A stretch of DNA of 62,101 bases, counting the filler, from Bipalium vagum (taxonomy: Eukaryota): NCBI GenBank assembly GCA_037834085.1. It is 3 parts of 3 records of this genome, joined end to end, with 100 filler letters (N's around TTAATTAATTAA, not from the genome) between each part and the next. Parts side by side here need not be neighbours in the genome. Positions count along the whole stretch, not along the records: positions 18,473 to 44,275 come from JBBMKC010176556.1; 2 more parts are not named here. One strand, given 5' to 3'. The notes beneath the pieces were generated by a model. That model was not told where the DNA came from. It ran no database searches and was given only the letters and a program-made list of their open reading frames with translations. Shown piece by piece: positions 951-40,800 of this stretch (positions are counted from its first letter, which is position 1; each line of letters starts with the position of its first letter). The position numbers and the translations under genes were made by a program.

Positions 951-3489
951 TGTCAGCTTCAATAGATTATTATTTGACACTGGATTAACAAATTATCTTT
1001 CATTTTATTATTATGGTAATTTACATATTTCTTTTGTTTAAAGAAATCTTTATAAGCTGAAAAATATTAATTACTTTTATATAAAATGGGATATCTGAAA
1101 AATATACCATTTTAAAGTAAAATTTTTATGAGTCACAACAGATAATATTAATTAAGCAACTCTCACTAATTCAGATCAATAAACTATATTCAATACGGTG
1201 ATAAAATAAATAATAGAAAATCGAAAATCAAATCATAATAATATAAGGTCAAATTAATACTTTTAATATAATAAAATGGATGAGTACTGTATCAAATAAT
1301 ATAAAATCAAATAACAGATAAAATGAATAAATGAAAAAATCTGGTGTCGTATTAAATATAATAGGCTCCTGGATCAACCATGAGACCCTTATTAGCTGAT
1401 TCGTGATTGATCGACCTCTATCAAGTAGCCATGCAGCTTTGACAGCCAAAACATACCTTTAATGAATATTCTTTTACACCTTTTGAATAAAATATTTAAG
1501 TCTTTTTTTAAGAATGGTCGATTCTCGTTTTCTTTTCTTTTATCAGTTTTTCTCTTAATCTATTCAGCTCTAGAAGAGCCACCATATGGTTGATCACCGC
1601 ATTCCCAGAGCTCTGAGCGCATGTAATTTTACCTCTTTAGGACCTGAAAGAATGCTTTTGCAGGTATTGCTGCCTAACAGAAAGATAATTAATTATGACA
1701 TGCAGCATTAGCCGCTTAAAGGCATCAGTTAGCATTTATTGACGACTTCTTCTGATTAGTGAAATAAATAATTGCAGCGCCACAGAAGATATTAAAATAA
1801 TTTTCACAAAATCAGAGAGAAAAAGAAAGAGATCAATATATGAGGGGTTTCCTGCCATATAGGCCTTTTATTAAGTGGAAGCTTGCCTAATATGGCCACT
1901 CATAAAGGAAATCTTAACTTTTTAAAGTATTAAGTAAACAAAAATGAAGAATCTTTTGTGGCAAATCGTAGTACTGACCTGAAAAATATTTGAATACTTG
2001 GTAATAAATGTCCATTTGGAATTATTGTAATTTATTTGCATTGCATTTGATGTTGTTTTATTCAAATACATACAGGCCATTTAAGTTGTTTTAAATTTTC
2101 GTTATATTAAATAAAGAACAGATTTATATCTCATACCAATTTCCTTAGTATGTTTATTTGTTAGACTGTATGCACTTTTGTGTTTGCATTCTTCAATATG
2201 ACCAAACAATTGCATGTTTTTAAATTACCATTAAAAGAAAAATATTCTGCAATAATTTTTATTTAACGACTAATTATATTGTAGAAGTGCTGCCTTCATG
2301 ATACCACAAACTGATTCATATGGCCCTCGCAGGACTCTGAATTTGACATGCATGATGTACATGTATATAAATTATATACAGGGTACGGTGCTAGAATAAA
2401 GACAAATTTAAATTGAGATTTCTCTAATATTATAAATCATGAATAATTTAAATATTTTTTCCTTAGATCGATAATTTCAATATTATATCGAAACGAATTT
2501 TAAATGGCCAATCGGAACGAGTATGATAAAAGAGCTGCCGACATCGAAACTAGTTCAATTTAGTTAAATTATTTAAAACGAATAAATAAGAAATAATTTT
2601 AACAAATATTAGGTACATTCATAAGTTTTGAACCATTTTTTCATCGTTGGTTTACTAATCCAAATATTATTAAATAACTGCCGCGAAAATTTACATTGGT
2701 AATCAAAGCATTAATTTTTATAAATATATTAATTTTATTCTTTAGTTATTTTTAAAACCTGGGGCATTGTGATCAGTATGTTTTTAATTCACAATGTGTA
2801 ATTCTACCCTTAAAATTAGAACAGTAAGTATAGAATAATAGAATATAATAGTAATAATTATTTGATTATATACTTATTCTGGAACAGTTTATAAATGCTA
2901 GTCTTAAAAATCTATCTATTCACAAAATCCCATGTACCAGCCCAACAGTAAAATAAATGTAAATTCCATAAAATTTTTTTTTTGAATTTTGAAATCAACT
3001 TATCAAATATTAATAAATATTTTTGTCCATGTTAATAATAATGTTACATACACAATAAGGAACATAGAAAGTATAAATTAAAAAAAATATTATATACATT
3101 AAATGGGGATCACATTATTTTAAAAACAATTGCGGTTTTCATTAAAATTTGCCTAAAATTGTTCATCCTTTCAATTATGCTAAATGAAACTATAAAACAA
3201 TTTTTGTTATCGTTTTTCAATGAAATTAATTATATAATTATTTTGTTTCTGTCGGCTTTTGCATACCGTAAAATAATTCATTGAAATTTAATAATTAAAT
3301 TAACAAATAAACATTACAGAATTATAAATAATTTCATTTATATTTTATCATTTTTAATATAAATTAAAATACGATGATTTAAACAATTTTTAAAAACGCT
3401 TTTTATAAAAATATGGAAAATAAATAAAAAAAAATATTAAATCATTTATCATATTTTAATCTTAATAAATTAATTATCAATATATTATT

Positions 3490-4700
3490 TTGGAAATGGC
3501 TTTAATCAGCAATGGCAACCAGACTTCCAAGTGTCGTTCTTCTGATCATCATGATAATCACGTACGAAGTATAATTACTGAAAATACAGTCGAGCTTTTC
3601 AATGATTTCTTAACTTTTTCACATTAAAAATGTACTGGCACTATCCCTCAGATTAAGATCAAAACTAATAATATCTGCCATATGACAATAATCATAATAC
3701 TTTCACAAACAAAAATTTCCGAAGAATTACTTTTGCGTTACTTGAAATTTATTATTAGATTAAGAATAATGAAACAAAAATTTTATGTTTTCTACTAAAA
3801 TGGTTTTGTTCTGTAAGATTGTCTTCTAATTGTCCAAAAATCCTTAATTGATTGCTTGTGATTTTCTTTATTTTCGGATGAAAGAAATCTTTGGAATGAC
3901 TAACTGTGAAATGTTTTATTTTTTGATTAAGGAAGAATTCAAATAAATTTTAATATCCTTCCATCAATCAGTCATAACAATTGTTTTATGTACAATTCTT
4001 CTTTATATCATATCAACCAAGGGTTTTGTACTACGATTCTCATAAAATTCAATAAAACATTCCGTGTTTTTACCACGAGTTGCGCTGCCAACAAATCATT
4101 TCTGATTATGAAGGACTCGACCATGATGATATTTCTTTATGCTGCCAACGCTTCATAAATTTCAGTTATTTATTTTTCATCTCCAATAAGTCCTTGGTGA
4201 TTTTTATCATAAATAATGTGCACCAGAGCCAGTATAATTTTTTTGCTTTGTATGCTGATTTCCCAGCACAAAAATATATGAGAAATGAGATCGAAAATAT
4301 AGGTAACAAAACATTACGCAAAATATCAGGCTTATTCGTGCAAATTTGAGGATGAGGAACTTTAAATAATTTTTTTATCATTATTATAAGTACACTTTTT
4401 TAAATGGCTTAATATACTCCATGTACAAGGTTTATCACAATGTTTAATAATTATTTCAAAATGCTTTTATTAAATACAAAATTTTTAAAATTGTTTTAAA
4501 TGTTATATATTCTTACGATATGATAATGTCAAACTCTGTTGAAATTTGTTTCAAAGATTTTCCTTCATCATCCTCGAAATAATTACATATGCACAATACA
4601 TTCAATGTAATACCTGATTCATATTTAAGATAAACAATTTCCCTTAATCCGTTGCTGAAATGTTATTTTCTGCCATTCTTAATTTTAGGTTTGATAATTG
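3490..4700 (-). mobile_element. Merlin (IS1595/ISXO2-like DDE) transposase pseudogene
   Basis: Minus-strand translation with stops and frameshifts: ITEIYEA..KYHHGRVLHNQK*FVGSATRGKNTECFIEFYENRSTKPLVDMI*RRIVHKTIVMTD*WK..HFTVSHSKDFFHP..HKQSIKDFW. This follows the Merlin consensus VEIDE..RKYHRGR..QWVFGG..NRS..TL..I.SD.W..H.TVNHS..F..P..HTQ.IE..W. TIRs were not identified and the boundaries are approximate. Confidence 0.8.
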
Positions 4701-18541: not shown

Positions 18542-19710
18542 TTATTCATGACATTCATTCAAATAAAATGATTATAATGGATATTAAGAATTCCTATATA
18601 TTGCATGAATTTAAGATATATCGTCCATAAATCAGTAAATATAATAGTTTTGAGGAGAATAATAAATTATAAAATTTCAATTACTGACAGATAAAAAATA
18701 TTATTTATGAGTTTTGTGTAGAACAAACAGGAAACATTTTACTATCTAAATCTTAAAAAAATAAAATAAAGACTCATAAAATGCAAATTTATCGAACTCA
18801 CAAAGATTTTATGGAATAATTTTTCCATCAATAAAGGAAAAGGACTTTGCACATTGCACTCTCAATGAAATAAAACAGTTTATTTATATAATTTTACAAT
18901 ATATTATTTAATGTGAGTATTATAATATCGACTTTTCTGGTGTAATAACGTCATAAACATAAATGATCAACATTTATGATCAAGATCAACAGATTTGTGT
19001 TAAGAAAAAGTTACACAAAATTATAATATAAAATCAAATAAAAATAGAAGTTCTGACATTGAAATAAGCTATTTTACTACCTCTTATAACAATACGATAT
19101 TACTGAGATTTAGTGATGAACTGAACTAAATGGCTGACATCCACCTTAAGATCTATAAAAAAGAATAATGTAAAAATGGAGAAGCAAGCCCAACCTTCAA
19201 GTCCAAAAAACACAAATCACGTTCCAATGAAAACTTAAGCTAAATTATTGATTTTTTTATATTGATTTTTTAGTCATTATTTTATTTTTATTATTTTCAA
19301 AATATTTTCAAAATTTCATCATTATCATATTATTTTCTTATTATGTTTAATTTAATTTATGAGAAATTTAATTATTCAATACTTTCATTTTTTCAGGATT
19401 TTATTTATTTCTTGCTTTTAATTGCTCTAATATAAAATCAAATAAAAATAAAAGTTCTGACAATGGTATGAAATTGATATGAAGAGAAAATTGTAATATA
19501 TTTTGAAAATATAAATAAAAATATTTTCGTCAAATCAATTCTGCTTGCCTCATGCAATAAAATGTTTCAACAGATTTTTTAATCAATAATGAGATTTTTC
19601 ATATTTTACTAAAAAATCAATAAAAAAAAATAATAGTGTAAACATATGCGATGTGTGGCCAGCGGTTGGTCAGCTCATGATCAAATTGGTAATTTGTTTT
19701 TTCAGTCCAG

Positions 19711-22378
19711 ATGAAAGATGAAAAAAGCTTATGGTGCTTAAACCATGATGAGAAAAAGTACTTATAAAATATAGCATCGTCAATTAAATTCAGTGAAAAT
19801 TATTGATTGATAAATAGACAGACTGGAACTATCATTGATGGAATCCCTTGCAGAATTGGTTAAGAAAAATGATCGCGAAGAATTTCGTTCTCGGGTCCAA
19901 CGTGAGCTGAGCGATGAGAGAGCATTTCTGGATTTATTGGACAAAACGGAAAAGGAAAGGGCTGTTCAGTGGTGTAGAGAAAGTGATATATTTTTGTTGC
20001 ACAGAATGTTTACAAAGATTGACCAAGTCAAGTCAGTGGAATTTATTAAAGATAATTTGCCATTCTATAAAGCCCACCATTTACGGGACGATTTAGATCA
20101 AACCTGGCTCCATGTAGCCGTAGACAATAACAGAAGTCTGGCTGTCTTGGATTATCTAATTAACGATCTTCAGATCGATGTTGAAAAGACCGATTCCTCG
20201 AAATTCACTGTACTCCATATTGCCTGTCTCAAAGAACAATACAATAAAGGCGAGTTGGATTTGTTGATCAAATCGTCCGATCAACTGGTGGCATTGTCCG
20301 TTGAGGACGTAAGTCCCTTGGAATATGCTTGCGGAGACATTCGAAAGTTGAAAGACATCAAGAAGAACAAATTCGTCAAAATCAATGAGTTGCTGGCTAA
20401 AATCGATCGACTGTTCATCGGATTGCCCGAATGCGACGATTACCATTTCAATGAGAAAATATCCTTGGAAAATATGTGGCTTAAGTTATTACAGAAAAAC
20501 GACAAATATAGACTTATTAATCACATGAAGAAAGATGTGCATTTTGTTGAAAAGTTTTATTTGAAGAATGAAGACATGATTGAAATCATTTCCAACTGCC
20601 ATGAAAATGGTCAGGGTATTTTGACGTACGTTAAGAAGATAATCTCTCAAGACAACAATGGAATTCCAACTTTGGAAGATATCTTTACCCTTATTACCGG
20701 CCTAAGAGTGAAACAGAAGCAAATAACTGAAACATCAGAACATGAAAACGACTACATTCATTCAGCCTTGTTTATGGTTTTAATCACAGGGAGATTAGAA
20801 CTAGCTCCGCCATTGCTGACCTACTGTCAGTTCGATATCATCCCCTATGGACTTTTGACGTGTTTAGTTTGTTATAAATTGTCTAGAATTAAAGAATTTC
20901 CCGAGCAGGTTTTAGGAAATATTCAAAAAGTAAAGAATTTCTCGGAAAAATACTCAGCAATGGTGTTGAATAGAACGGTAATTCGAGATCTGACTGAAGA
21001 TAAAACCGTCGTTTCTCAGTATTTGAACAAGTCAGAAATTATTGGAGGTCAGAAAATTCTGGACATTGCCTATATGGGAGAATGTTCCAAATTTCTTGCA
21101 CTACCTACCTGTCAGAAGGCATTAACAAAGTTATGGTATGAAAAGAATCGGAAATGTGCTGCCTTGAAATTCTATTTGCACTCCTTCGTTCATTGTCTGT
21201 TCTTAATTATCTTGTCATACATTTTAGTCAACAATTTCTATGCCAAAGTCTCATCACTGGAAATCGTCTGTTACATCTATGGTATTGGATATTTAGCTGA
21301 AGAGGTTCGTCAGATATACATTTGTTATAAAGAAACTGGACTGACTACATTTTACGGAAAAGAAGCATCAAATTATCTTGATCTGGGTGCAATAGTTACC
21401 ATGTTGTTGGCTGCCATTTTACGAATGGCTCTTCCAATAGAACAGTTTCCAGATCAAGGAAATCAAGGTTCATATATGGAAAGTAAAGATTTCAATTTAT
21501 TTTTCATCAGATTGACATTGTGCATTTCACTTATTTTGTACTTTATGAGGATTATTTATTTCGGAGCAATTTTTGAACAATTGGGTCCAAAATTACAAAT
21601 GATTGCAGAAATGATAGTTAAAGATTTGATGCCTTTAATTTTTATATTTTTGGTATTTATAACGTCGTTTGGCGTGGCATTTCAATCATTGATGTTTCCT
21701 AATAGTTTCTATACATTAAAGAATAACAACACCTTTGAAAAAAAGTCATTGAAAGACGTTGTAGGCATCATTTTTCGACGATCTACTGTCACAATATTTG
21801 ACACCCATTATCCATTTGAAGAGCTGGAACATGATGAAGGCGGGTACATCGTGAATCAGGACGGTAAAACAGCCGTTTATTTTCTTTTGGTTATTTATAT
21901 GGTCGTCGTTAATGTCATGCTTACAAATTTGTTAATAGCACTATTCAGTTATACTGTTACAGTTATCATCCAGAAGTCTCGAGAATCATGGAAAGCTAAC
22001 AGATATAAGGATATCAAAGAGTACTATGATAGGTCTTTACTTCCACCTCCATTGAATTTGATTGAAATTATAGTTGAGATAATTTATATAAAATTCCAAA
22101 AACTCCATTCGAAAAATAAAGAAAGACCAACAAGTGATGAGATGAAATTGGTAGAAAATAACAATGATGGTTTCCATAAGGACCATTTTATATCATACAA
22201 AATTCTCCAAGCATTTGCCCTGAAAGATTGCCGTTATAAATTAGTGTTGAGTGAAGAAGATAAAGAATATGAAAGAAAATTTAGTATTAAGATGATAAAG
22301 AAAGGAATTGAAAATATAGAAAAAACGATTAAGTTAAAAAACCTCAAGCAGCCTTCGCAAGTTGCAGAAAAAAATTAG
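19711..22378 (+). CDS. TRPM-like cation channel with N-terminal ankyrin repeats (about 865 aa)
   Basis: An 847-aa ORF runs 19835-22378. A probable small first exon 19711-19757 (MKDEKSLWCLNHDEK) splices in frame over a 64-bp GT-AG intron to 19822. Ankyrin repeats: QTWLHVAVDNN, FTVLHIACLK, SPLEYAC. MHR4-like segments: LFMVLITGRLELA and ILDIAY..CSKFLALPTCQKALTKLW. There are 6 TMs, with S2 AEEVRQI, S3 NYLD, S4-S5 linker LGPKLQMI, S5 SFGVAFQSLMFP, S6 NVMLTNLLIALFSYT and TRP domain WKANRY..IKEYYDRSLLPPPL. Confidence 0.9.
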
Positions 22379-26296: not shown

Positions 26297-27523
26297 CTAT
26301 TAATTAATATCCTTATAAATAAGTGTTAGGGTTTAGCCCTAAAATCAAGTAATTATTTTGTTTACTTCTTCACTTCTGTCGGAGATTCTTTTTTTGTTTG
26401 TAGTTCACACACTTATTATGGTGGTGAATTACCTTCCTTGAGGGCTTTTGAGACGTTGATATTTTTATCAACGCGAAAAGATTCTGTTCTTTAATTAACC
26501 GTAAACCAAGGGAAAAGATTTCTTGTAGAGGATTGCTTAAAAGGCAACCACTCTTAACTTGTAAAAATCAATTTTTGAGTGTCAATAAAGTTTTGAAAAG
26601 TAATTAGTTTTCTCAGTCGATTAAAAATCATATTTACGAACACCTTCTACTCGTTAAGCTCTTAGTGTTAGCTCCAAATTTAAGAGACTTAACGTACATA
26701 ACGTATTGCACCAATAAATGACAACTAGAATTGGTACCATGGACTGCCCGAGGTTTTACCGGAAAATTGGGTTGAATTTCAGTTAAGAGGCAGAGTTACT
26801 AATCTGTTGATGATCTAATATATTTGATCTCCAATGGCAAAATACCTTGTTGTCCTCACTGATGGTATCCTCAAGTTAGCTTCGTCCTGCTGAGTTTGTG
26901 AAGGAGTGAAAAAACAGTAAATGTAATTAATGTCGTAGTTTAAATAAAACGTTACGAACAATCGTTTTTGCTCTGTTACGAGATTCCAGTATCTAACAGG
27001 GAACCGCCACATTCGCTAAACATATACACCATTGAGAAAGACCTGCAATCCGATTAATACTGACTTGTGAGACACAAATTAAAATAGGTATTTAACTGGT
27101 TTGAAATATGACATTTAAGTAAAATAGATGAAAGTTTTTTATTTTATAAAGTTTTAAAATTTTTTGTTAGCTAAAATATTTATTAAAAATATTTGAATCA
27201 TTAATAGTGAAAATGAATTAAAATTGTTAAATATTTTAAGAAAATTTAAATTCCAGAAATGATTTTTTTTATTTAATTATTATATAAGTAAAATTAATAC
27301 TAATATTTAAAAATAAGAATGTATTTTTAATTTTGTTAAATAAATTTTAACTTATCTCTAATTATGTGTTTTAATAAACAACAAAACGCACGTATCTAAG
27401 ATTTAACAAACTTATATTTGCGCGATATTTGTAATTAAATCACTAGTTTTTTAAATTTAAAATAATTTGTTATAAACTTTTTATTTTAATAGTTCTATAG
27501 AATTAATTATACTCAATTTGAAA

Positions 27524-30500
27524 ATGAATCAATCTGTCAATGTTGCAGTCTATACATCTTTGCCACCGAACATAAACAAACCAGAACCTTATTTTTATTT
27601 AAATTTGCATATTACTTATCTTAAATGGCTAAGTAAAATTCATAACAATTTCGAAGATATTTTAGTAAAAGTTTTATGGTGGGGAGAAGAAAGTGAAGGA
27701 GCAATATTTCATCCCCGTTGTGTAAACTTAGCTGGTTATAAGCAAAATGTTAGAACCCATGCAATGTATCCAGTTTGTGTTCCTTTGAAACATTTCTCAG
27801 CATATTTAAATGATATGGGCAAATTAGGAATTGATATTATAGACAAAAATAAAAAATTTGTGATCGGTAAAGCTTATGTTGATAATTTGGAACAATTAGC
27901 TTTTAACAAAGGTTTACAATCATTGTGTATAATTCTCAATGAAAAGAACAATAAAATTGGAGAAGTTATGATAGCAATGTCTTTGGAATCAGTTCAAAAT
28001 CAGAAAATAGTTGATCAAGATGTCTTTCAAAACACTGAGGTTAATAGTATTCCTAAAGAAAATTTTGCACCGAACATACAGAAAACAGTTATACATAATC
28101 GAGAAGCGATTAATGAAAAATTTTTAACAGACAGTATTGAAAAAGATGTAAAATCTGAAAATTTCCTTGACAAATTAATTGAAAAAAGCAAAAATATTAG
28201 AGAAACCATTTCAATAGATGTAAAGAACGATGAAATCAATAATGAAATATTTAAAAAAACATTTCCAAATTGCATTGATCATCCTGAAGGCTTGAATATA
28301 ACGGATCATGGCTGGCTCAACAATGTACTTCATAATCCCAGTGAAAACGATCTATCTGTCAATGACATATCTAAAATAAATACAGAATCGATTTTAAAAT
28401 TTTCAGAGAATTTTTCTCTACACAGACCGAAAGAAAACATTAATAATGACCGAGAAACGATAAAATTAATTGCCGGCAGTGACTCTTTCTCTTTGGAAAA
28501 TGGAGATTTTCGTGATAAATATCAATTCTTGTCCGATTCCGAAGCATATATTTTGAAAAAGCTCGATAAAGAAATTTCGTCAGACGATGATCCTTTTAAA
28601 AACGAAGAAATTATTGAGGAATTATTTTATAAAAAAGCGGTAACTTTCTTTTTTGCGTTTTATGTTTACTCTCCTTGTATTTGAGAATTTTTCAGAATTT
28701 TGTTATAATTGAATTTATTGATACAATCATATGATAATTATGTTTCTTAAAGTGTGCGGAGTCTAAACGTGATAATATCATTGACATGAAGATGAGCCAG
28801 AGAAAACTGGAACTAAGACGTGATTAAAAATTTTTCAGATAAAGTGAATTATAATTAGCAATAATAAATAGTGAAACTATAATTCACTTTGTATATTGTT
28901 TGTTCTATATATCAATTTGTGACTGTTAATATTTATTTATGAAAAAAAATTAGAAAATCACTTTAAAATTATATATTATTTAGTTTTTAATAAATAAAAT
29001 CAGTCATAAGTCTATTTTCATTTGATTAGATAATCTATCAAATTCAAAAAACTCTACTTTTGATATTTTTATTATTGTTATTATTTATTATTATTATTAT
29101 TATTATTTGACCGTGTTTTTATTATTATAATTATATTATCTTTAGTATTATAATCAAGCTTAGGCTCTTATAAATTTGGTGGAAATTAAATCTTTAAATT
29201 TACAGATGCCTGAAGATAAAGTGATATCAGAATCTCAGAATTCGCAGAATGTAAGATTTTTTATTTCTTTGGTTATATTTTTATTAAGCATGGTTAATTG
29301 TTCAGAAATAAGTTCAATATTTCAAGTTTTAGAAAATTTTATTCTAATTCAATGTTTAGATTCTTAAAAATCAATCAATAACTGATAGCATATAAGAAAC
29401 ATTTACTTGTATGGCAGATTTTAAATTTTATCGATTTTCTTCAGTGAATTTGACTAATAAAAGGGCTTTTCTTAGAAAATCATTTTTGAAATTATTTTTT
29501 TCATTTTTTTTGAAAAATTTTTGTTTATTGTGAAGAAAATTGATATCCTATAAAATATTTTGATGTCATCATATTTAAATCAAGATGTTAAAAATCCATA
29601 AATTTTACGTAACAACAAAGCATGGGAATATAGAAATAAATTAAATTATCATATAAGATTTTCAATTCTTTATTTTGTAATTTTTTGATTAATTTAATTA
29701 GTGGTTTGATTTAACAATTTTTTCTTATTAGAATTTTACATTATATACCTTAAAATTTAGATTTGTTAATTTATTTTATATATTTATTAAACTTATTAAC
29801 ATTTTTTGATAGTTTAACTTATGATTTTCTAGTTAAAATTCTAGTAGTATGACAAAAACTCCTTATTACGAGGATAAATCAAACATTTCCGATAATGATC
29901 GAATAAAATTAAATTTTAAAAACTGATTTTGCAAATATTCAGATCAAGATTTAGAAATATATTTTTCACTTAGTCTTTATTTGGGGGAGGTTTTACTTAA
30001 CTTTTTAAATTCTGTAAACGTTAATACAAAATATTAGTTTATTTAAAATTTTTACATTAAAATACATTTTTAAGTTTGTTGAGAAATTTTAGCTTCTTTG
30101 ACTAACATGTTTTTGATTTTTTAGGTTTAATTTTTAACCTAAATATGATATGAAGCTGTTATCAAATTTTACCTAAACAGATAAATATGAAATGAAAATA
30201 CACATCAAAATATTATGATGGTGCATATGAAATGTCTTTTTGCATATAATTTTTAGCTGTCAAAAATAACTGAGATAATTTTAAAGTCCCCTCATAATAT
30301 ATCCATTTTCCAACTTTTGACCTTACAAATCGAAATAAGACACGCAAAGCTGTTGTATGTCTTTCCAATTTCGCATAATGTTTGGCAAGATTATTGACCA
30401 ATTAAACTCTTCAAAACGTTGTTGTCAAGACTGTTTCCAGGTCTACCTCATGGTTTTTTTTCAAGGCTTGATTTGTCAGATCTGTATTTTTCAAACCAAC

Positions 30501-31804: not shown

Positions 31805-34800
31805 ACACTGATAAAATTAAATATAGATTGAAAAAATGGTATCTTAAAATAATGCCATATTGTAATGAGAAAAAACAAAATAATTTTTAAAAATGATGTG
31901 TGATTTCGAAAATCATAAAAATTAAATTATTCAATGTCTTTAAAATTCGTTTTTTGAAATATTCTTTTTTTATTCAACTGTATTAAATACTGTTTTTTCA
32001 AAAGACATTGATAATTTTAAATGTACACCAAAACTATGATCTTTCCCTGATGCAAAGATCATAGTTTTTAAATTAAAGAGATCATTTTATTTTAGTTTTA
32101 TGGAAATAATAAAAATCTGTACATTAAATATCCCTGAGGTTACTATAGTTTAAATTTAGAGGCATTACGACCATTTTTTGTAAAAATGATTATATATTAT
32201 TATTTTTTATTATTAATTACATTACATTGTTGTTTCTTTTTATTTATTGATATAAATTGAAATTATTTTTGTAATTTTTTAAATTATAAATTTATTGTTT
32301 ATTCATTTATTGATTTACTTTAATTTGCCATTCATTTGTCAATATCATAAAATTATCTATTTTCCATTTTAGTACCAAAGTTTAAAGAAATAAAAGAAAA
32401 AATGTGATCAAAAAGTGTAATTAAAATATTTTTATAATCATTCATTAATTCAAATTATTATAATTTTAAAGTTTATTGATTTATTTTGATTTTGTTAATT
32501 ACTTTGTAAGAATGTGAAGACTAAATTTTTTGTTTTGACTAAGTTTAATTTTAAAATATTGTGCTATTTTGATACTTTAAAACAATTATTTCAGTTTGTC
32601 AGATATTAGATTAGTAAAAAGATTAATTTTTGTAACCATTTTTCCGATTGATAAATTGCTTATATGAGGAAATTAACGGATTATTCCTTATTCCAGTAAA
32701 TATTACATTGATTACAAATTTCCTTCGAACTCGCTACAAAATACTGGATCGAAAACCGATAATATTTCATTTGACGTATCCTCTACAAGAATACCTGTTA
32801 AACTTTCAAGTTTCAATCAGAATGCTTCCGAATTAAATGGAGTGAAATCTTGGTCACTGGACCATGTTACAACATTTCCGATGACTTTAAATGACGGTTC
32901 TCTAATTCAAAAGTGGTGGAAAGGAAATATTCGGTTTAAATTAATTTCCCAAGATATATCGAAAGTTTGTTTGAAAATTAATATATTTAATCTTTGATTT
33001 AAACTATTAATCAATACTTATTTAACAATTTAAATTTGTTATGTCCAAGAATGAATGATTTTTAAGTAAATAATAAAATAGAATTTGTCAATCCAAAATC
33101 AGAACTTATCATAAATATGATGTATTTTTCTTTAAAATTATGAAAATGCGACATTAATAAATTAGACAATATTTTTATAAACTGGTCTTTATTATTATTT
33201 GTATTTTTATTATTAAACAAAGAAATTAATATAACATGAATTAATCAGAAATTGATTTTTTAAAACTTTTATTATTAATTAATTAAATTTTGCTAATTAT
33301 AATAATTATTACCAAGGCAACGATTTATTTGTCCATGTCCACTAAAGGTAAGCCTTTAATGGTTGGATTTTACTGTTCTTTTTAAAGTAATCAGAGATTT
33401 TTACACAAGATGAAGAGATTTAACCATATTCATATCCTATTTATCTAGATCGATTGACAAAGTCAATTTGATATTTCTGTTTGTTAGTCGACCTTTCTTG
33501 TTCATCAGACTTGATTTCTTCCAATATTTGAAAATATTTAGATTAAAATTATTAATAATTTAAATATAAAATTAAATAATGTCAACAATAAGATGTAGAG
33601 TGAAATCTTTGTAATACTCATAGAAACTATTAGGTGTGCGAATAAGTAGCCGGAATCCGACAATCTTTCACAGTTTTAAAATGCTTGGTAGTACATAAAT
33701 AATATATATGTTGTTTTAAAATATCAATATTTATCTTCCAAAGTTAAATATAAGAATGATTTGTTTAAATATTCTTCTTTAATTAAGAGTTAGAAAAAGC
33801 AGCATTTGCGGGAAGTTTTGTTAGAATACTTTTTCTCCAAGAAGACTGCTGCTGAAAGTCGCCGTTTATTAAAGGGAACATATGGGAAAGATGCTTTGTC
33901 AAAAACACAATGTTTTGAATGGTTTCATTGGTTAAAAAGCATCAAAGGCGATGATCAATTTGGGCACCCGAAAAAGTTCGATGATGAAGAATTGAAGACT
34001 TTTCTCAACCAAGATTCATGTCAATATCATTGGGAGTCGATCGTTTTACCATGGGAATGATTCAAAAACTAGGAAGATGTGTGCCATACGAATTGAGACC
34101 GAAAAACCTAGAACGTCGTTTGTGTATCTGTGAACAATTGCTTCAACGTCAAAGACAAAAATCCTTCTTGTCTTGTATTGTAACGAGCGATGAAAAATGG
34201 ATATACTACAGTAATCCTAAGCGAAAAAGATCATGGGGAGAGTCCAGACATACCTCTACATCGACGGCCAAGCGAAACACTCATGGTCAAAAGGCCATGC
34301 TATCCAATTGGTGGGATCAGATAGGTATACTATGTTATGAATTATTGCAACCAAAGGAGATCACTATCAACTCAAATAAAGAAAAAGCGACCATATTATG
34401 CCGAAAGGCATGATAACATTATTTTGTTACATGACAATGCTTGGCCGCATGTTTCGAAATTAGTTACTACATACATAGAAACCCTTTGATGGGAAATCAT
34501 ACCCATCCGTATAACCCAGATATCGCTCCCACCTGTTACGTTTACTTATCGATTACCACCTGTTCCGTTCCATATCGCATAGTCTATATCAGGGCTTCTT
34601 AAACTTTTTTATATATCGACCCCCTTCAAGCTTATGAAATTTTAAACGACCCCCTCCTCCATATAATGAAATATATATTAACCATAGATGTAGATGTAAT
34701 ATCGCACTATTTTACAATGTAAATAAAATAATGATTAAAGAATACGTACTCATTCATTTCACTCTAGATGACCAGCAGTTTCGTTCTTATGATGACACCA

Positions 34801-37800
34801 TAAAATGGCTTGATTTGGATCTCCTCATAAAATCAGGAATTTTATCAACTAAATAAATAACCGGATTTTCTTGAAGAAATACTTAAGAAAAAAAACTAAA
34901 GTTAATAATATTTATTATAGGAATTAAAAACATTTTTTGTTAGAAGTATTTTTCACCTGTTGCCACCACTTTCTCCAATATATCAAGTGGGCAACGGATA
35001 CCATTTTGAAAAAAAATCCTGATTTTATGAAGAGATCCAAGAATGGAGCCATTTTATGGTGTCATCATAAGAATGAAACTGCTGGTCACCTAGACTATGC
35101 AACATGGAACGAAACAGGCGGTAATTGATAAGTAATCGTAACAAGTGGGAACGATATTTGGGGAATACGGTGGGTGAGGTATGATTTCCCCTTTATTCCC
35201 ACGATTTTTCAAAATGGAATACCTTGCCCACCTGAAATATTGGAGAAAGTGGTGGCAACTGATGGACAATACTTCTAACAAAAAATGTGTTTAATTCCTT
35301 ATAATAAATATTATTAACTTTAGTTTTTTCTTCTTAATTATTTCTTCAAAAAAATCCGGTTATTTATTCACAAACCCAATATTATGATACGAATGCATTA
35401 TATTCATGATGTCTGACTTTGCTGTTACCCACTGAAAAATTAGAGATTCTAAAAATTTAAACTACAAAAAAAACCACTAACGATAAAATTAGTTTTATTT
35501 ATGAAGTTGATTTAAAACATCCAAAAGAATTATGAAATTCAGCAAAATATTTTCCATCTTGTCCCAAAAAATAAAAATAGAAGATACTTTATTATCAAAT
35601 TTTCAAAATAGATATTAATCTGAATATTTTAATGAAAAATTAATGTTTACACAATTTGATAAGAATATGGAATATTATATATAAAACTGCACTTTCTCTA
35701 TTTTTGTTATCCGGCTTGCTTTTTATTGTACTTTATCTAGAACCAGAAGAAAAGTATATATTGGTAATCAATTAATTAAATTAAAGACTTATATTTAAAA
35801 TTATTTCTCACAAATTATGAGGAAGATAATTAAAATTATGATATTTTACATTTTAACAATTGTCATAAAAACGAATGAATTTTCACGTTTTATTGTATAC
35901 TAACAATATTTTGGCCATTATCATTAAAAATTGAATAATTTCTTTTGAATTTTTACCATCTTACAAAATTTGGAATTCTTGTCATAGTTTTCTTATACGA
36001 CCGATTAAAGTTTGTATTCTGACACCCAATCACAGAAAGAAACTGTTGTTGGAATAGGAGTTGTACCGTTACGCAATATTATATCAACCAACAACTTTTA
36101 CCGACTGATACCGATACGATTGCCTCGAAGCAAATTGACGCGTAACAATGCTAGAGTAATTATTGGATCGCTGGCTCTCAGGACATCAATGATATTATCT
36201 AAAACAGACATCACTTTTCCATCCGATTCTAGATCACAGATTCAGGTAGCATCAGAATCAAAGAACAAATGTAAAAGTTATATTTATTCATTAATATTAA
36301 TGTAAATTGAAAGTTTATAATTCTATCAATCCATATTTTTTAAAAATTCAAATTTTAATCAATTTTTTTAAATTTAGAATTAATTTTCAATAAAATATTT
36401 TTAAGATATTAATTTAATATTTATGTATTTATTTTTTATTTTAAAAACGTGAAATAAAAGCATCACCAATGAAAATTTTTGGGAATAACTGAAAATTATA
36501 TTTATTGAATTAATAAACGATGCTATTATTCTTTACTTTTTATACATAATATTCGTTTCATTTTCTCAAGCCGATCCTTAAATAATTTATTCCACTCTAA
36601 ACTTAGTATTCTGAAAATGTGTGACAGTCTGATAATGTGGAATGCCTGTAAACCATATCTGATCAATACGAATCACATATTTATTTTTATTATTAAAATA
36701 TTTAGTATAATTGCGTAGTTTTTCATTCGACATTCTTTCAATTCTTTTTTGAACATGAACTATGAACCACTTGTTTTACTTTATCGCTTTTTATGAACTA
36801 TGAATAGCTATTTATTTACTTAATTAAAAAATCATCTAAAGGAATGGTTATGAGATGAATAGATTTTTCTGCAAATATGGAAACTATTTTTGGAAGTGCA
36901 TCGATATCAGCTGGTAAAATTTCTCATTGTGATTTTCTCATTTTTATGAATATATTCCTGATTCTACAATGACAATGAAGCAACCATGTTTTGAGGTTCC
37001 TTTAGTAAATTATTTGAATTTTGACACTTCTATGTGTAGATTACACTTTAGATTATGTTGTATACATCGGGAAAAAGGTTTCGCTAGCCTTAGAACTTAT
37101 GAAACGTATTTAAACCTAAGATTTTTTCAGTTATGTTTAAATCTCATCAAATTTTATTCGGAGACCTTTAAGTGATGAGTTTCAAATTTTCATTTAACAA
37201 CAAATTTTGATCTAAAACTTATTTTTTGATTTATCGCACAGAAAAACTCGTTGACATTTAAATTGGTCAATTCAATATGTTATGAATATGATTCTAGTAT
37301 ATTTTACAAGAAGATGAAAATTTTTATCCATTACATATGAAAACTAAGTAGAGTATGTCCCATAAATACTTGTGAAATTAAATTTTGCTTATCATTACAA
37401 GAAAAATATAAAGAACAAAAACCGAAGAATTCCTTATTCTTCCGTATAATACTTGATTAACAAGTTTTAAGAACAGGATCTCTGTTGCGAAAAAGTCCAC
37501 CAAACAGAAAATAAATTCAATGCAATATTGAGGGTATTGGAAGTATAACACCAATAACGTCTGTAGGTTCACTGGACGTTATTGGTTTTTTAAATTCACA
37601 AGTATTTATGGGACATATACTATATTTCAAGCAATCTAGATCAAAATGGAAAATAGGAATTGTTTGAATTTTTATTATTAAAAAGGATTCAATGATTTCT
37701 TTGATGGAATGAGTCACTTTTAGTTGATCACTAATAAAATATTAGGTTGTATCATAAAATGTCCAATTTCAAAAGATAATTTTTGCAAATGTCTTACAAT

Positions 37801-40800
37801 AATTTCTAGTGAAATTGAAGAAATATATTATATTAAATATGGTATTTTCATATTTGTTCAAATAATCCAAAAAAATCTCAGGAATAGCACACAAACTGAC
37901 AAATAAAAAATTTACATAGTTATAAAAATGAAAATTATGATATGCAGATTCTGAAGATGGTGAAAACAGAAATTTAGCATTCAGCAAAGATACAGTTAAT
38001 TAGATGATGTATTTGAAATTTGAAAAAGGTTGCGAACCCCGATAAAATGCAGACCATGGTCGATGCAGAATACTTCATGAAAATGACGATTAAAATTTTA
38101 ATTCAAATGTTCAGGATTTGGCCAAAGTATTCATTGTTAATCTCAAGACAATTACAAAACATTGAAAGAGATTTGTTAGATTAAAATTTTTTCAATAATG
38201 AGTTACGCATTTATTGAACCAATCACAAAAAAACAAGTGACTTGAAATTTGAAAAATTTTTTAGTTATTTAATGAAATGGATCCGTTTTAGTCATCATAA
38301 AAAGTGATTAAAAATACGTTTTCTGCAATAACCTAAGATATGCAGCACAATGGGTAAATCTCGACCAATCTCTGTCCTCGAATCTAAATCTACTATGTAT
38401 CCCAAAAAATCTGGTGGTCTATGGCTGATCTCATGCACTTTTCACTGATAGATCCTGGCGACACTTATTCAGCAGACAAGTACTGATTAGATCTAGAAAT
38501 GATGCACCAAAAATTAAGCACCAAATAGTCAACTGGAAAGGATTAATCTTACTACATACCAATCCATAGTAATATGTATGCAAAGACCTTGCAAAAACAA
38601 ACTGAACTATGGATAAGAAGATTGTGGCTTACTTCTAATTCCGTAGACTTTGCACGAACCAATTATCATTTCTTTAAAGCACTCCATAATATTCCAGGCA
38701 AAGAAATCTTTGAAAATTAGGATCGTATCAAATTGAGTATCTCCGACATCATCAATTCTAGAAAACCAGATTTTTACAAAAATGGTATTCAAAACCTGGT
38801 AATTCGTTGATACAAATGTTTTGAATGCAATGGTGACTATTTTAATTGAAAAAAATATTTCTTATATCTATTTCATTGTTTTTTCTATTTATCCTGTAAT
38901 CGGACATTTTATATGACACAACTTAATAAGTTTTGATATAACGATTTATTGAAGAAGCGAATAATTAGATTTGTAATCATATATTGCGGATTTTCAAAGT
39001 CAATAATAATTTAAGACTTGTAAATTCTGTGAAATTTTAAAATAGATATCTTAATACAAAAACTTAAGTTGAAAATATGTTTAAAAAACACTAAATATTG
39101 AAACGTGATTTCTTATATTAAATTATATTATGTTTATTGTTAATTTATAAAATATATGAGCTGTATCATTGCACTGAATAAACATTTCAAATATTTAGAC
39201 TCTCGATCGTTGAAGATATCTCCGAATTCTTATAATAAAAGGAATTTTCAAAAAATATATTCATTATCATCTCATACCAGTCCCTTACCGGTAGTCTCAA
39301 CAAAACTCGTAAGAATATTTGATTTCACCATTCTTCTGTGTTACACTGTTTTATTGACAGCAAACACCATTCACTCTTGAAAGTTTCTTGTATGTTTCCA
39401 ACATTAGACATATCAATCCGAAATCAACCAACAATGGATACAAGTCCAGTAATTTTTTTGAGTATTATTTCCACATTTAACTAAATTTAATATTGAGCAG
39501 TGCGTTATTAATAATATTATTATTATATTTGTTGTTGACATACAATGAAAGTTTAATTTTAAAATTAACTCAAGTTAAAAACTTTAACAATAAAGTTGGA
39601 ATAAATAATAATTTAGAATAAAAAATAATTTAATAAATATTTAAAATTACTAAATCTTTATTTTTAATACCTAAAAAATGAAAGTATGATAAAATAAATA
39701 TTTTAATAAAATAACATAATTAAATTAAAACAATAATTAATTATAAAGAATTAAAATTTTTCGGTAATTTAATTTTTTATATACAGATTTTTGCTATAGA
39801 TAAAATTATAATAATTAAACCGCTTGATGTTTTAATTATTAACTTCATCAACATATATAGTTAAAAACAACCTTTAGGTTCGATTTGTTTTAACTGTCTA
39901 ATTTAATCAACTTTTTCTAAATATTATATATTATATTTATTATATCTTTTCTTCTAAATTCTTGTATTTCTTCATAAATTAAGTTAAAAATATTTATAGT
40001 TAAATTTATATAATATTTTTTAGAAAATTAAAATAATTGGCACCTAAAGGTTATTTTTAACCACATATATGATGGAAATGATTTATCAGAAAATATAAAT
40101 TTAAATAAACAAATAATTAAAAAAGATTTTTTATAGCTAACAAGAGTTGCAATTTGTTTATCATTGGTCGACTTCTTTGGGCAACAAATCAAAAAATAAA
40201 ATCGCCAATTTTATGGGGCACAAGCAAAGTTTCTGAGAATCAGCCGGTTAATGAATTAGAGAATTTCAAATTGGTCGCAAAATCAACGCTCGTGTTAACA
40301 GGAGAAATTTTGGAAAAATTAAAAGACAATTATGCCATATTAGAAGTTTGGGATGTCAGTGGAGAAAAAACCAAAGAATCTTTGTTTGGATTAGTTAAGA
40401 TTCCGTTAAATATTTCTTATTTGAGCTTTAAAAATGAAAAAATACGTAATACCATTTTGAACAATGTAGTAAGTTTTACTTTATTTATTAAAATCTAAAA
40501 ATAATGATATTATATTTACTTAAATGTTTTCACTATTCTTAACCGCCAAAATAGAGAAGTTGGCGTACTGATTGATAATTATTGTATTTATCGGACTACA
40601 AAGAGCACAGTTCTTTTGGACAATAACAAATATTTTGACAGAAAAAAATTAAGTCAAATATTTTATTCTTATAAGTTATGATTTTCAAAGAATTACACTT
40701 TTTGTGATTTTTATGCACTATATTGTCATTGATACATATATTCCTGTTTTCTGGATGTTTGTGTTCATATTGTAAAAGTTGCTAACTGACAAGCCTTTAT

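Follow-up and report, generated by a model that had tools for sequence, protein, structure and literature searches.

The window analyzed here is a 62,101-nucleotide (nt) stretch of the genome of the flatworm Bipalium vagum (GCA_037834085.1), composed of parts of three records joined end to end, and the gene in question lies on the part derived from JBBMKC010176556.1 (18473-44275). This part is strongly AT-rich, with a GC content of 19-25% in intergenic regions and ~35% in coding stretches. The gene is a single uninterrupted open reading frame (ORF) for a TRPM-type channel subunit (TRP, transient receptor potential) that carries ankyrin repeats at its N terminus and is related to the schistosome channel TRPM_MCLZ. 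The original prediction, made from the sequence alone, had recognized one intact ORF ending at 22378, which the ORF listing confirms, but placed its start at 19711 and its length at ~865 amino acids (aa). That ATG (19711) belongs to another reading frame, which ends after 18 codons (MKDEKSLWCLNHDEKKYL, followed by a stop), whereas the channel frame opens at TTG 19835/ATG 19838, with two in-frame stops just 5' of ATG 19838, so that the actual product is 846 aa long. Residues are numbered below from the Met of ATG 19838. One sequencing run (X1) contains the locus, and in it a single 6811-nt contig spans the channel gene and both flanks without any differences.

The N-terminal region of the window protein is an ankyrin-repeat domain, in which three hairpins are recognizable from the sequence (aa 84-176; nt 20087-20365). 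The Pfam family Ank_2 is detected above threshold at the same columns in homologs, including C210929, a paralog from the same genome (37.2 bits), and the database relatives P0002 (44.2 bits) and P0001 (27.5 bits). An AlphaFold2 (AF2) model of aa 1-205 alone reached a predicted local distance difference test score (pLDDT) of 85.9, and its structural matches in the PDB were ankyrin-repeat domains only (among them Espin1-AR, KANK2, ankyrin-G, and DARPins). In the full-length AF2 model, the ankyrin domain is confident from residue 1, with pLDDT values of 93-95.

The rest of the protein is of the TRPM type. All the TRPM motifs listed in the original prediction are present in the window protein (LGPKLQMI, SFGVAFQSLMFP, NLLIALFSYT, WKANRYKDIKEYYDRSLLPPP, and LWYEKNRKCAALKFY). 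In a phmmer search against the PDB, the top 60 matches of the transmembrane (TM) half (aa ~445-786) were all TRPM chains, with E values from 2e-24 to 3e-14, including those of choanoflagellate TRPM2, TRPM4, TRPM3, TRPM5, TRPM7, and TRPM8. The full-length AF2 model, built from a 56-sequence alignment (pLDDT 86.5; predicted template modeling score 0.83), shows the predicted six TM helices (S1-S6), together with a pore helix, the TRP helix, and two long C-terminal helices; Foldseek matched this model to TRPM3, TRPM2, and TRPM4 at E ~1e-16. With VIA-align, aa ~198-846 of the model were superposed on TRPM structures with Z scores of 17-20 and a root-mean-square deviation (rmsd) of 3.7-6 A over 430-510 residues, the match beginning at residue ~405 of TRPM4 and at residues ~417-440 of TRPM3, TRPM7, TRPM8, and nvTRPM2. 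Candidates for the C-terminal coiled-coil tetramerization helix of TRPMs are the two long helices (aa 767-795 and 806-836), which superpose on TRPM rib and pole helices, although PF16519 (TRPM_tetra) was not detected by Pfam. In agreement with these matches, the profile of the ankyrin-bearing family aligned with a canonical TRPM profile at a probability of 100 and E 2.4e-82 in hhalign, with aa 206-754 of the window protein corresponding to aa 558-1216 of a 1403-aa mollusc TRPM.

These alignments also define which part of a canonical TRPM is missing. The core of the window protein has S1-S6, the TRP helix, and TRPM homology regions (MHR) 3 and 4, and lacks MHR1/2, that is, the SLOG module. A Pfam scan of the window protein yielded no matches to SLOG (LSDAT_euk, PF18139), NUDIX, alpha-kinase, or Ion_trans, consistent with the expected absence of SLOG, NUDT9-H, and kinase domains. 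The same genome encodes SLOG-bearing, multi-exon canonical TRPM genes on other contigs (C231732, 16657-18484; C5161; C219661; C218019; and C225221; PF18139, E down to 1.7e-25). The ankyrin repeats had been proposed to stand in place of MHR1-3; because MHR3 and MHR4 are retained in both the profile and the structure alignments, they occupy the place of MHR1/2 only.

Just upstream of S1, the stretch from W433 to F445 spans 12 residues, as short as originally noted, compared with 64-195 residues in nearly all other ankyrin-type and canonical TRPMs; the pre-S1 elbow is therefore missing from the window protein. A search of the genome (440 Mb in 272,664 contigs) showed that the gene belongs to a family of four intronless paralogs, each a single uninterrupted ORF. 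The two long paralogs, C202017 and C9135, score strongly for ankyrin repeats (Ank_2, E 4e-31), have Ion_trans and a complete pre-S1 segment, and are candidate co-orthologs of TRPM_MCLZ. The two short ones, the window gene and C210929, form a short subfamily (818-846 aa) with a reduced ankyrin domain, together with P0001, P0002, and the fragment P0005. About 205 residues precede MHR3 in the short subfamily, ~280-320 in the long paralogs and in P0008, and mostly ~420-450 in neodermatan TRPM_MCLZ proteins. C210929, P0001, P0002, and P0005 share this short layout and its 12-residue pre-S1 junction at 41-58% identity, so the layout is an old one that has been maintained. One uninterrupted ORF likewise encodes P0008, which is 1072 aa long and related to the long paralogs (Logan DRR639838 contig L016, gene 1298-4516).

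HMMER, run exhaustively against 1.84 billion representative proteins, returned 27 matches below 1e-30; a word-index protein search, queried with the full sequence and with the TM core alone (aa 440-760), gave only P0001, which reflects the limit of the index rather than an absence of relatives. Every relative with a readable origin is a flatworm protein, from Opisthorchis, Dicrocoelium, Schistocephalus, Macrostomum, and Fasciolopsis in the HMMER search and from Schistosoma, Trichobilharzia, Fasciola, Calicophoron, Sparganum, Taenia, Echinococcus, and Anoplocephala in a second search. Among the full-length family members, Pfam detected Ank_2 in all 27, LSDAT_euk in none, and the TRPM2-like domain PF25508 in 8. 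On the opposite side of the tree described next, 53 of 70 long proteins carry LSDAT_euk, and an ankyrin match is found in a single one, which bears SLOG as well.

For the TM core, maximum-likelihood trees of 143 rows and of 75 rows were built under LG+C20+F+G4 with the quick search of IQ-TREE, and branch support was assessed with the Shimodaira-Hasegawa-like approximate likelihood ratio test (SH-aLRT). The window protein groups with C210929, P0001, and P0002 (SH-aLRT 99) within a clade of 28 rows (SH-aLRT 96) or 26 rows (97) that also holds the long paralogs from the same genome, P0006/P0008, and 18-20 neodermatan TRPM_MCLZ orthologs. The short group is sister to the rest of this clade (SH-aLRT 94-95), a position that does not correspond to one-to-one orthology with TRPM_MCLZ. 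The next group outside the clade consists of ankyrin channels from Macrostomum, and all sampled SLOG TRPMs, from molluscs, fish, rotifers, and flatworms, lie beyond one branch of the unrooted tree (SH-aLRT 92-94). The one non-TRPM TRP protein compared, the TRPA1-like P0215, scored -9.5 bits against the hidden Markov model (HMM) of the core and did not align to it as an outgroup, so that both trees are unrooted.

The same architecture has been described in Sm.TRPM_MCLZ (Smp_333650), the schistosome target of meclonazepam, which has a long N terminus with ankyrin-like repeats and is encoded by three exons (PMC10788528), lacks MHR1/2 or SLOG as well as an enzyme domain (PMC11731825, section 3.1), and is set beside other TRPMs as a separate group because ankyrin repeats make up its N terminus (PMC12861061, Fig. 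1 legend). All three papers call it 'TRPM-like', and it belongs to the 'TRPM-like' clade of Rohr et al. 2026. Meclonazepam-evoked Ca2+ signals and currents have been reported for this reference channel (PMC10788528, PMC12861061). Among the proteins compared here, cluster P0170 includes S. mansoni XP_018647895.1 and S. bovis CAH8481013.1, the latter being the S. bovis accession used for TRPM_MCLZ (PMC10788528), and has eight of eight residues at their published positions (H827, H831, Y864, E868, R943, H946, Y1038, and Y1117). The window protein keeps all six residues predicted to contact meclonazepam, namely H448, H452, Y485, E489, R571, and Y729, the counterparts of H827, H831, Y864, E868, R943, and Y1117 in Schistosoma. 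The two pocket histidines are specific to the ankyrin clade. The S1-S4 domain carries H448, H452, Y485, E489, R571, and the variable S4 residue, Y574, together with E489/Q492 in S2 and N512/D515 in S3, which match the E-x-x-Q/N-x-x-D motif that forms the Ca2+ site in TRPM2/4/5/8 structures. The pore reads T-V651-T-I-F-D655. At the variable S4 position, Tyr is characteristic of the less drug-sensitive Asian schistosomes, whereas the drug-sensitive African ones have His (PMC10788528).

The TRPM_MCLZ proteins of flukes, tapeworms, and monogeneans likewise have ankyrin repeats in place of SLOG/MHR1-2, followed by the MHR3/4 region and a TM core of the TRPM type with its TRP helix, have no enzyme tail, and they too are intron-poor, with three exons in S. 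mansoni (PMC10788528) compared with one in the window gene. They are, however, substantially longer (~1380 versus 846 aa), with more residues before MHR3 (~420-450 versus ~205), a pre-S1 segment of ~140-155 rather than 12 residues, and a C terminus of ~230 rather than 87 residues. They also differ at the S4 position, where the drug-sensitive African schistosomes do not share Y574, and in the pore, where V651 stands in place of the Tyr of the others. Canonical TRPM2/3/4/7/8 and the choanoflagellate and Nematostella TRPM2 superpose on the window protein from MHR3 and MHR4 through S1-S6 and the TRP helix to the rib and pole helices (Z 17-20) and share with it the E-x-x-Q/N-x-x-D motif, LGPKL, NLLIA, and the TRP box. 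Unlike them, the window protein has an ankyrin N terminus and lacks SLOG/MHR1-2, NUDT9-H, the kinase, the filter Gly, and the pre-S1 elbow. The ankyrin and Ion_trans proteins of Macrostomum lignano (uncharacterized database entries annotated as ANK_REP_REGION domain-containing, e.g., PAA51132.1) have the same architecture, some with significant PF25508 matches, and are sister to the 26-28-row clade, but are longer (985-1365 aa), with a full pre-S1 segment. TRPS (ced-11-like; Himmel et al. 2020) is another divergent TRPM relative outside the canonical clade, with SLOG and Nudix domains and no detectable ankyrin repeats (PMC7306681). The window protein is the opposite on each count, with ankyrin repeats and with no SLOG or NUDIX match, and does not fit TRPS by these domains; the trees contain no labeled TRPS.

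Taken together, we consider it probable, at roughly 85%, that the product of the ORF is one subunit of a non-selective cation channel, tetrameric and probably permeable to Ca2+, of the flatworm 'TRPM-like' lineage that includes TRPM_MCLZ. The comparisons above demonstrate its fold and domain order, the family to which it belongs, and the conservation of the pocket residues; the tetrameric assembly and probable Ca2+ permeability would follow by analogy with what is reported for Sm.TRPM_MCLZ, and activation by meclonazepam is a possibility for the window channel, in which the S4 position has Tyr, the state of lower sensitivity in schistosomes (PMC10788528).

Several observations weigh against this assignment. 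In the pore, V651 replaces a conserved pore-helix aromatic residue (Y1038 in S. mansoni, the site of the published mutant Y1038A), and the canonical filter Gly is absent (I-F-D), as it is across the whole TRPM_MCLZ clade. The missing pre-S1 segment is without characterized precedent in this lineage. Pfam scores Ank_2 in the window protein below threshold (23.5 bits versus a cut-off of 27.3; aa 82-137), although the homologs and the AF2 domain model agree with the approximately three ankyrin repeats of the original prediction. Both trees are quick runs, unrooted and with no outgroup, and carry SH-aLRT supports with no bootstraps; in these trees, TRPM_MCLZ has closer relatives in C202017 and C9135 than in the window protein, and therefore the properties of TRPM_MCLZ transfer to the latter by inference only. 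Transcript support was also sought, and no RNA run contains the locus; the run that does, X1, is DNA-like and uninformative on transcription or splicing.

Some of the same observations could be read differently. The contig begins just 1365 nt 5' of ATG 19838, the locus is covered by no RNA run, and multi-exon SLOG-bearing TRPM genes exist in the same genome, as would be expected if the gene were a canonical TRPM in which ATG 19838 is internal and the SLOG/MHR1-2 exons lie upstream, either unrecognized or beyond the available 1.36 kb. We find this very improbable, given that in-frame stops lie directly 5' in all four paralogs, with the open frame reaching at most 9 codons upstream of the Met in each, that the N termini of these paralogs and of P0001, P0002, and P0003 are co-linear, beginning within ~10 aligned residues, and that the ankyrin domain folds confidently from the first residue. 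Furthermore, a search for PF18139 gave no matches on any of the four paralog contigs, and SLOG is absent from all 27 relatives, including functionally cloned schistosome cDNAs (PMC10788528). A longer ankyrin-TRPM-like gene might also have given rise to a retrocopy that is silent or decaying, with the short ankyrin domain and the lost pre-S1 segment resulting from damage. Such a retrocopy would account for a gene that is intronless and shorter than its relatives, for V651 in place of the pore aromatic, for the weak ankyrin score, and for the finding that no RNA run contains the locus. Against such damage, however, the 846-codon frame is intact (the chance of as many open codons at the local base composition is ~3e-34), the short layout with its 12-residue junction is shared by diverged members of the subfamily, and all family members in the genome, long ones too, are intronless, with P0008 also a single ORF. 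In addition, the two short paralogs differ by a nonsynonymous divergence (dN) of 0.37 while the synonymous divergence (dS) is saturated, which makes dN/dS not computable for this pair. A retrocopy is thus improbable. Because of the upstream stops, the co-linear N termini, the location of the SLOG genes on other contigs, and the dN of 0.37, hidden upstream SLOG exons and a decaying retrocopy are both unlikely, and the channel gene appears to be complete and under constraint.

The N-terminal ankyrin repeats might instead point to an ankyrin-bearing TRP family (TRPA, TRPC, TRPN, or TRPV) as the source of the TM core, the likeness to TRPM being superficial, and TRPV6 chains do appear in the VIA-align list at Z ~17.5. 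Their rmsd is ~19 A, however, compared with 3.7-6 A for TRPMs. In addition, the top 60 PDB sequence matches are TRPMs, the TRPA1-like P0215 scores negatively against the core HMM, and the homology to TRPM runs through MHR3/4, regions that other TRP families do not have. Hence, an origin of the core outside TRPM is extremely improbable.

For the TRPM_MCLZ-like channel favored here, gating would originate in the cavity that S1-S4 form with the TRP helix, the predicted meclonazepam site of Sm.TRPM_MCLZ, whose six contact residues are kept in the window protein. Ca2+ would probably act as a co-activator through the conserved E-x-x-Q (S2) and N-x-x-D (S3) motif. Control by nucleotides or ADP-ribose would be impossible, because SLOG and NUDT9-H are both absent, and the ankyrin domain could form a peripheral cytosolic ring or a partner-binding surface.

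The original prediction had suggested a possibly uncharacterized channel class, with the caveat, which proved correct, that ankyrin-like repeats had been annotated in some flatworm TRPMs. The ankyrin-for-SLOG architecture is already published for Sm.TRPM_MCLZ (PMC11731825, PMC10788528, PMC12861061) and the window protein falls in that clade, an already described one; the window gene is therefore a shorter relative of TRPM_MCLZ and not a new channel class. Our literature search found no account of free-living flatworm members, of this intronless family, or of a short subfamily without the pre-S1 segment, and the four-paralog intronless family and the short subfamily may be new, if modestly so. 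A broad study of TRPM evolution, in which the flatworm phylum was not sampled, inferred an ankyrin-free TRPM/TRPS ancestor (PMC7306681), and a second broad paper does not mention flatworms (PMC13143021). All ankyrin groups lie on one side of a single branch of the unrooted tree, with the SLOG TRPMs opposite. On this basis it can be speculated, although we regard it as rather doubtful, that the flatworm ankyrin TRPM-like channels are a surviving old lineage that split before canonical TRPMs diversified and preserved an ankyrin N terminus, with the short subfamily being a natural 'minimal' TRPM without the pre-S1 elbow; if so, the ankyrin-free ancestor would have to be revised.

TRPM_MCLZ is a validated anthelmintic target that has so far been studied in parasitic flatworms only. 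In the present flatworm genome, whose place in the tree outside the parasite clade points to a probably free-living species, the ankyrin-for-SLOG design is represented by a small family of intronless genes, one form of which is stripped down: its ankyrin domain is shorter, its pore helix altered, and the pre-S1 elbow lacking. Natural variants of this kind help to define what is essential in the channel and its drug pocket, the short form offers a smaller construct for structural work, and the short and long variants bear on whether the ankyrin N terminus is ancestral or a flatworm innovation.

Table 1. Channel gene, encoded domains, and same-genome paralogs (positions along the window unless a contig prefix is given)
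Feature	Position	Strand	Residues or length	Basis or remark
Complete single-exon coding sequence, ankyrin-TRPM-like (TRPM_MCLZ-like) channel, short subfamily	19838..22378	+	846 aa plus stop	ORF listing, upstream in-frame stops
Ankyrin-repeat domain, ~5 helix hairpins	19838..20428	+	aa 1-197	Ank_2 in homologs at same columns, AF2 domain model
Cytosolic region equivalent to MHR3 + MHR4	20429..21136	+	aa ~198-433	hhalign from aa 206, VIA-align from model aa 197-206, PF25508 significant in 8/27 family members
Contracted pre-S1 junction, W433...F445	21134..21172	+	12 residues	Residue counts between conserved alignment columns; gap visible in hhalign
S1-S4 voltage-sensor-like domain	21158..21571	+	aa 441-578	AF2 helices; residues mapped on Schistosoma TRPM_MCLZ numbering
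S4-S5 linker, S5, pore helix with filter I653-F654-D655, S6	21584..21946	+	aa 583-703	AF2 helices, alignment blocks
TRP helix (W718-K-A-N-R-Y723...E728-Y729) and LPPP motif	21953..22057	+	aa 706-740	Alignment, AF2
Two long C-terminal helices	22136..22345	+	aa 767-795 and 806-836	AF2 secondary structure, VIA-align to model aa 835-846
Window paralog			846 aa	
C210929 paralog			833 aa	53% identical to window protein
C202017 paralog	L009:2937-6212	+	1091 aa	
C9135 paralog	L010:3438-6647	-	1062-1069 aa	

Some of the proteins recovered with the window protein have unusual domain arrangements of their own. P0004 (Opisthorchis viverrini KER32702.1, 1906 aa) contains two complete TM cores (aa 687-1020 and 1366-1698) and is the product of either a tandem duplication or a fusion of gene models; it resembles the duplication of exon 3a/3b reported for trematode TRPM_MCLZ (PMC12861061). 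P0038 (1781 aa), which clusters with Macrostomum P0033, combines Ank_2 (aa 133-219) and SLOG (aa 279-539), followed by the TRPM2-like domain and Ion_trans, and is a TRPM that genuinely has both ankyrin repeats and SLOG, or else a fused model; it bears on the route of domain exchange. Macrostomum lignano also has a second, very long-branched group of ankyrin and Ion_trans proteins (P0117, P0104, P0059, P0133, P0123, P0105, and P0122; up to 1694 aa; Ank_2 E 4e-53), which in the unrooted tree belongs neither to the TRPM_MCLZ-like clade nor to the SLOG TRPMs.

Approximately 140-200 nt 5' of the channel ATG, a GC-rich island (19640-19700) stands out within DNA of ~20% GC. It is single-copy in the genome, a search of the JBBMKC010176556.1 part, island included, gave no Rfam matches, and it may be a promoter or 5' untranslated region element.

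Farther downstream on the same record, a decayed mariner/Mos1-type transposase is found on the plus strand at 33806-34413, with HTH_48 and a partial Transposase_1 in two overlapping frames. The first coding exon of a C2CD3 homolog is located at 27518-28684 (plus strand; PF25339, C2_C2CD3_N, E 1e-35), and ORFs at 36012-36305 and 40154-40498 resemble further exons of what looks like a gene with many exons. Introns are thus a usual feature of this genome, whereas the channel gene has none.

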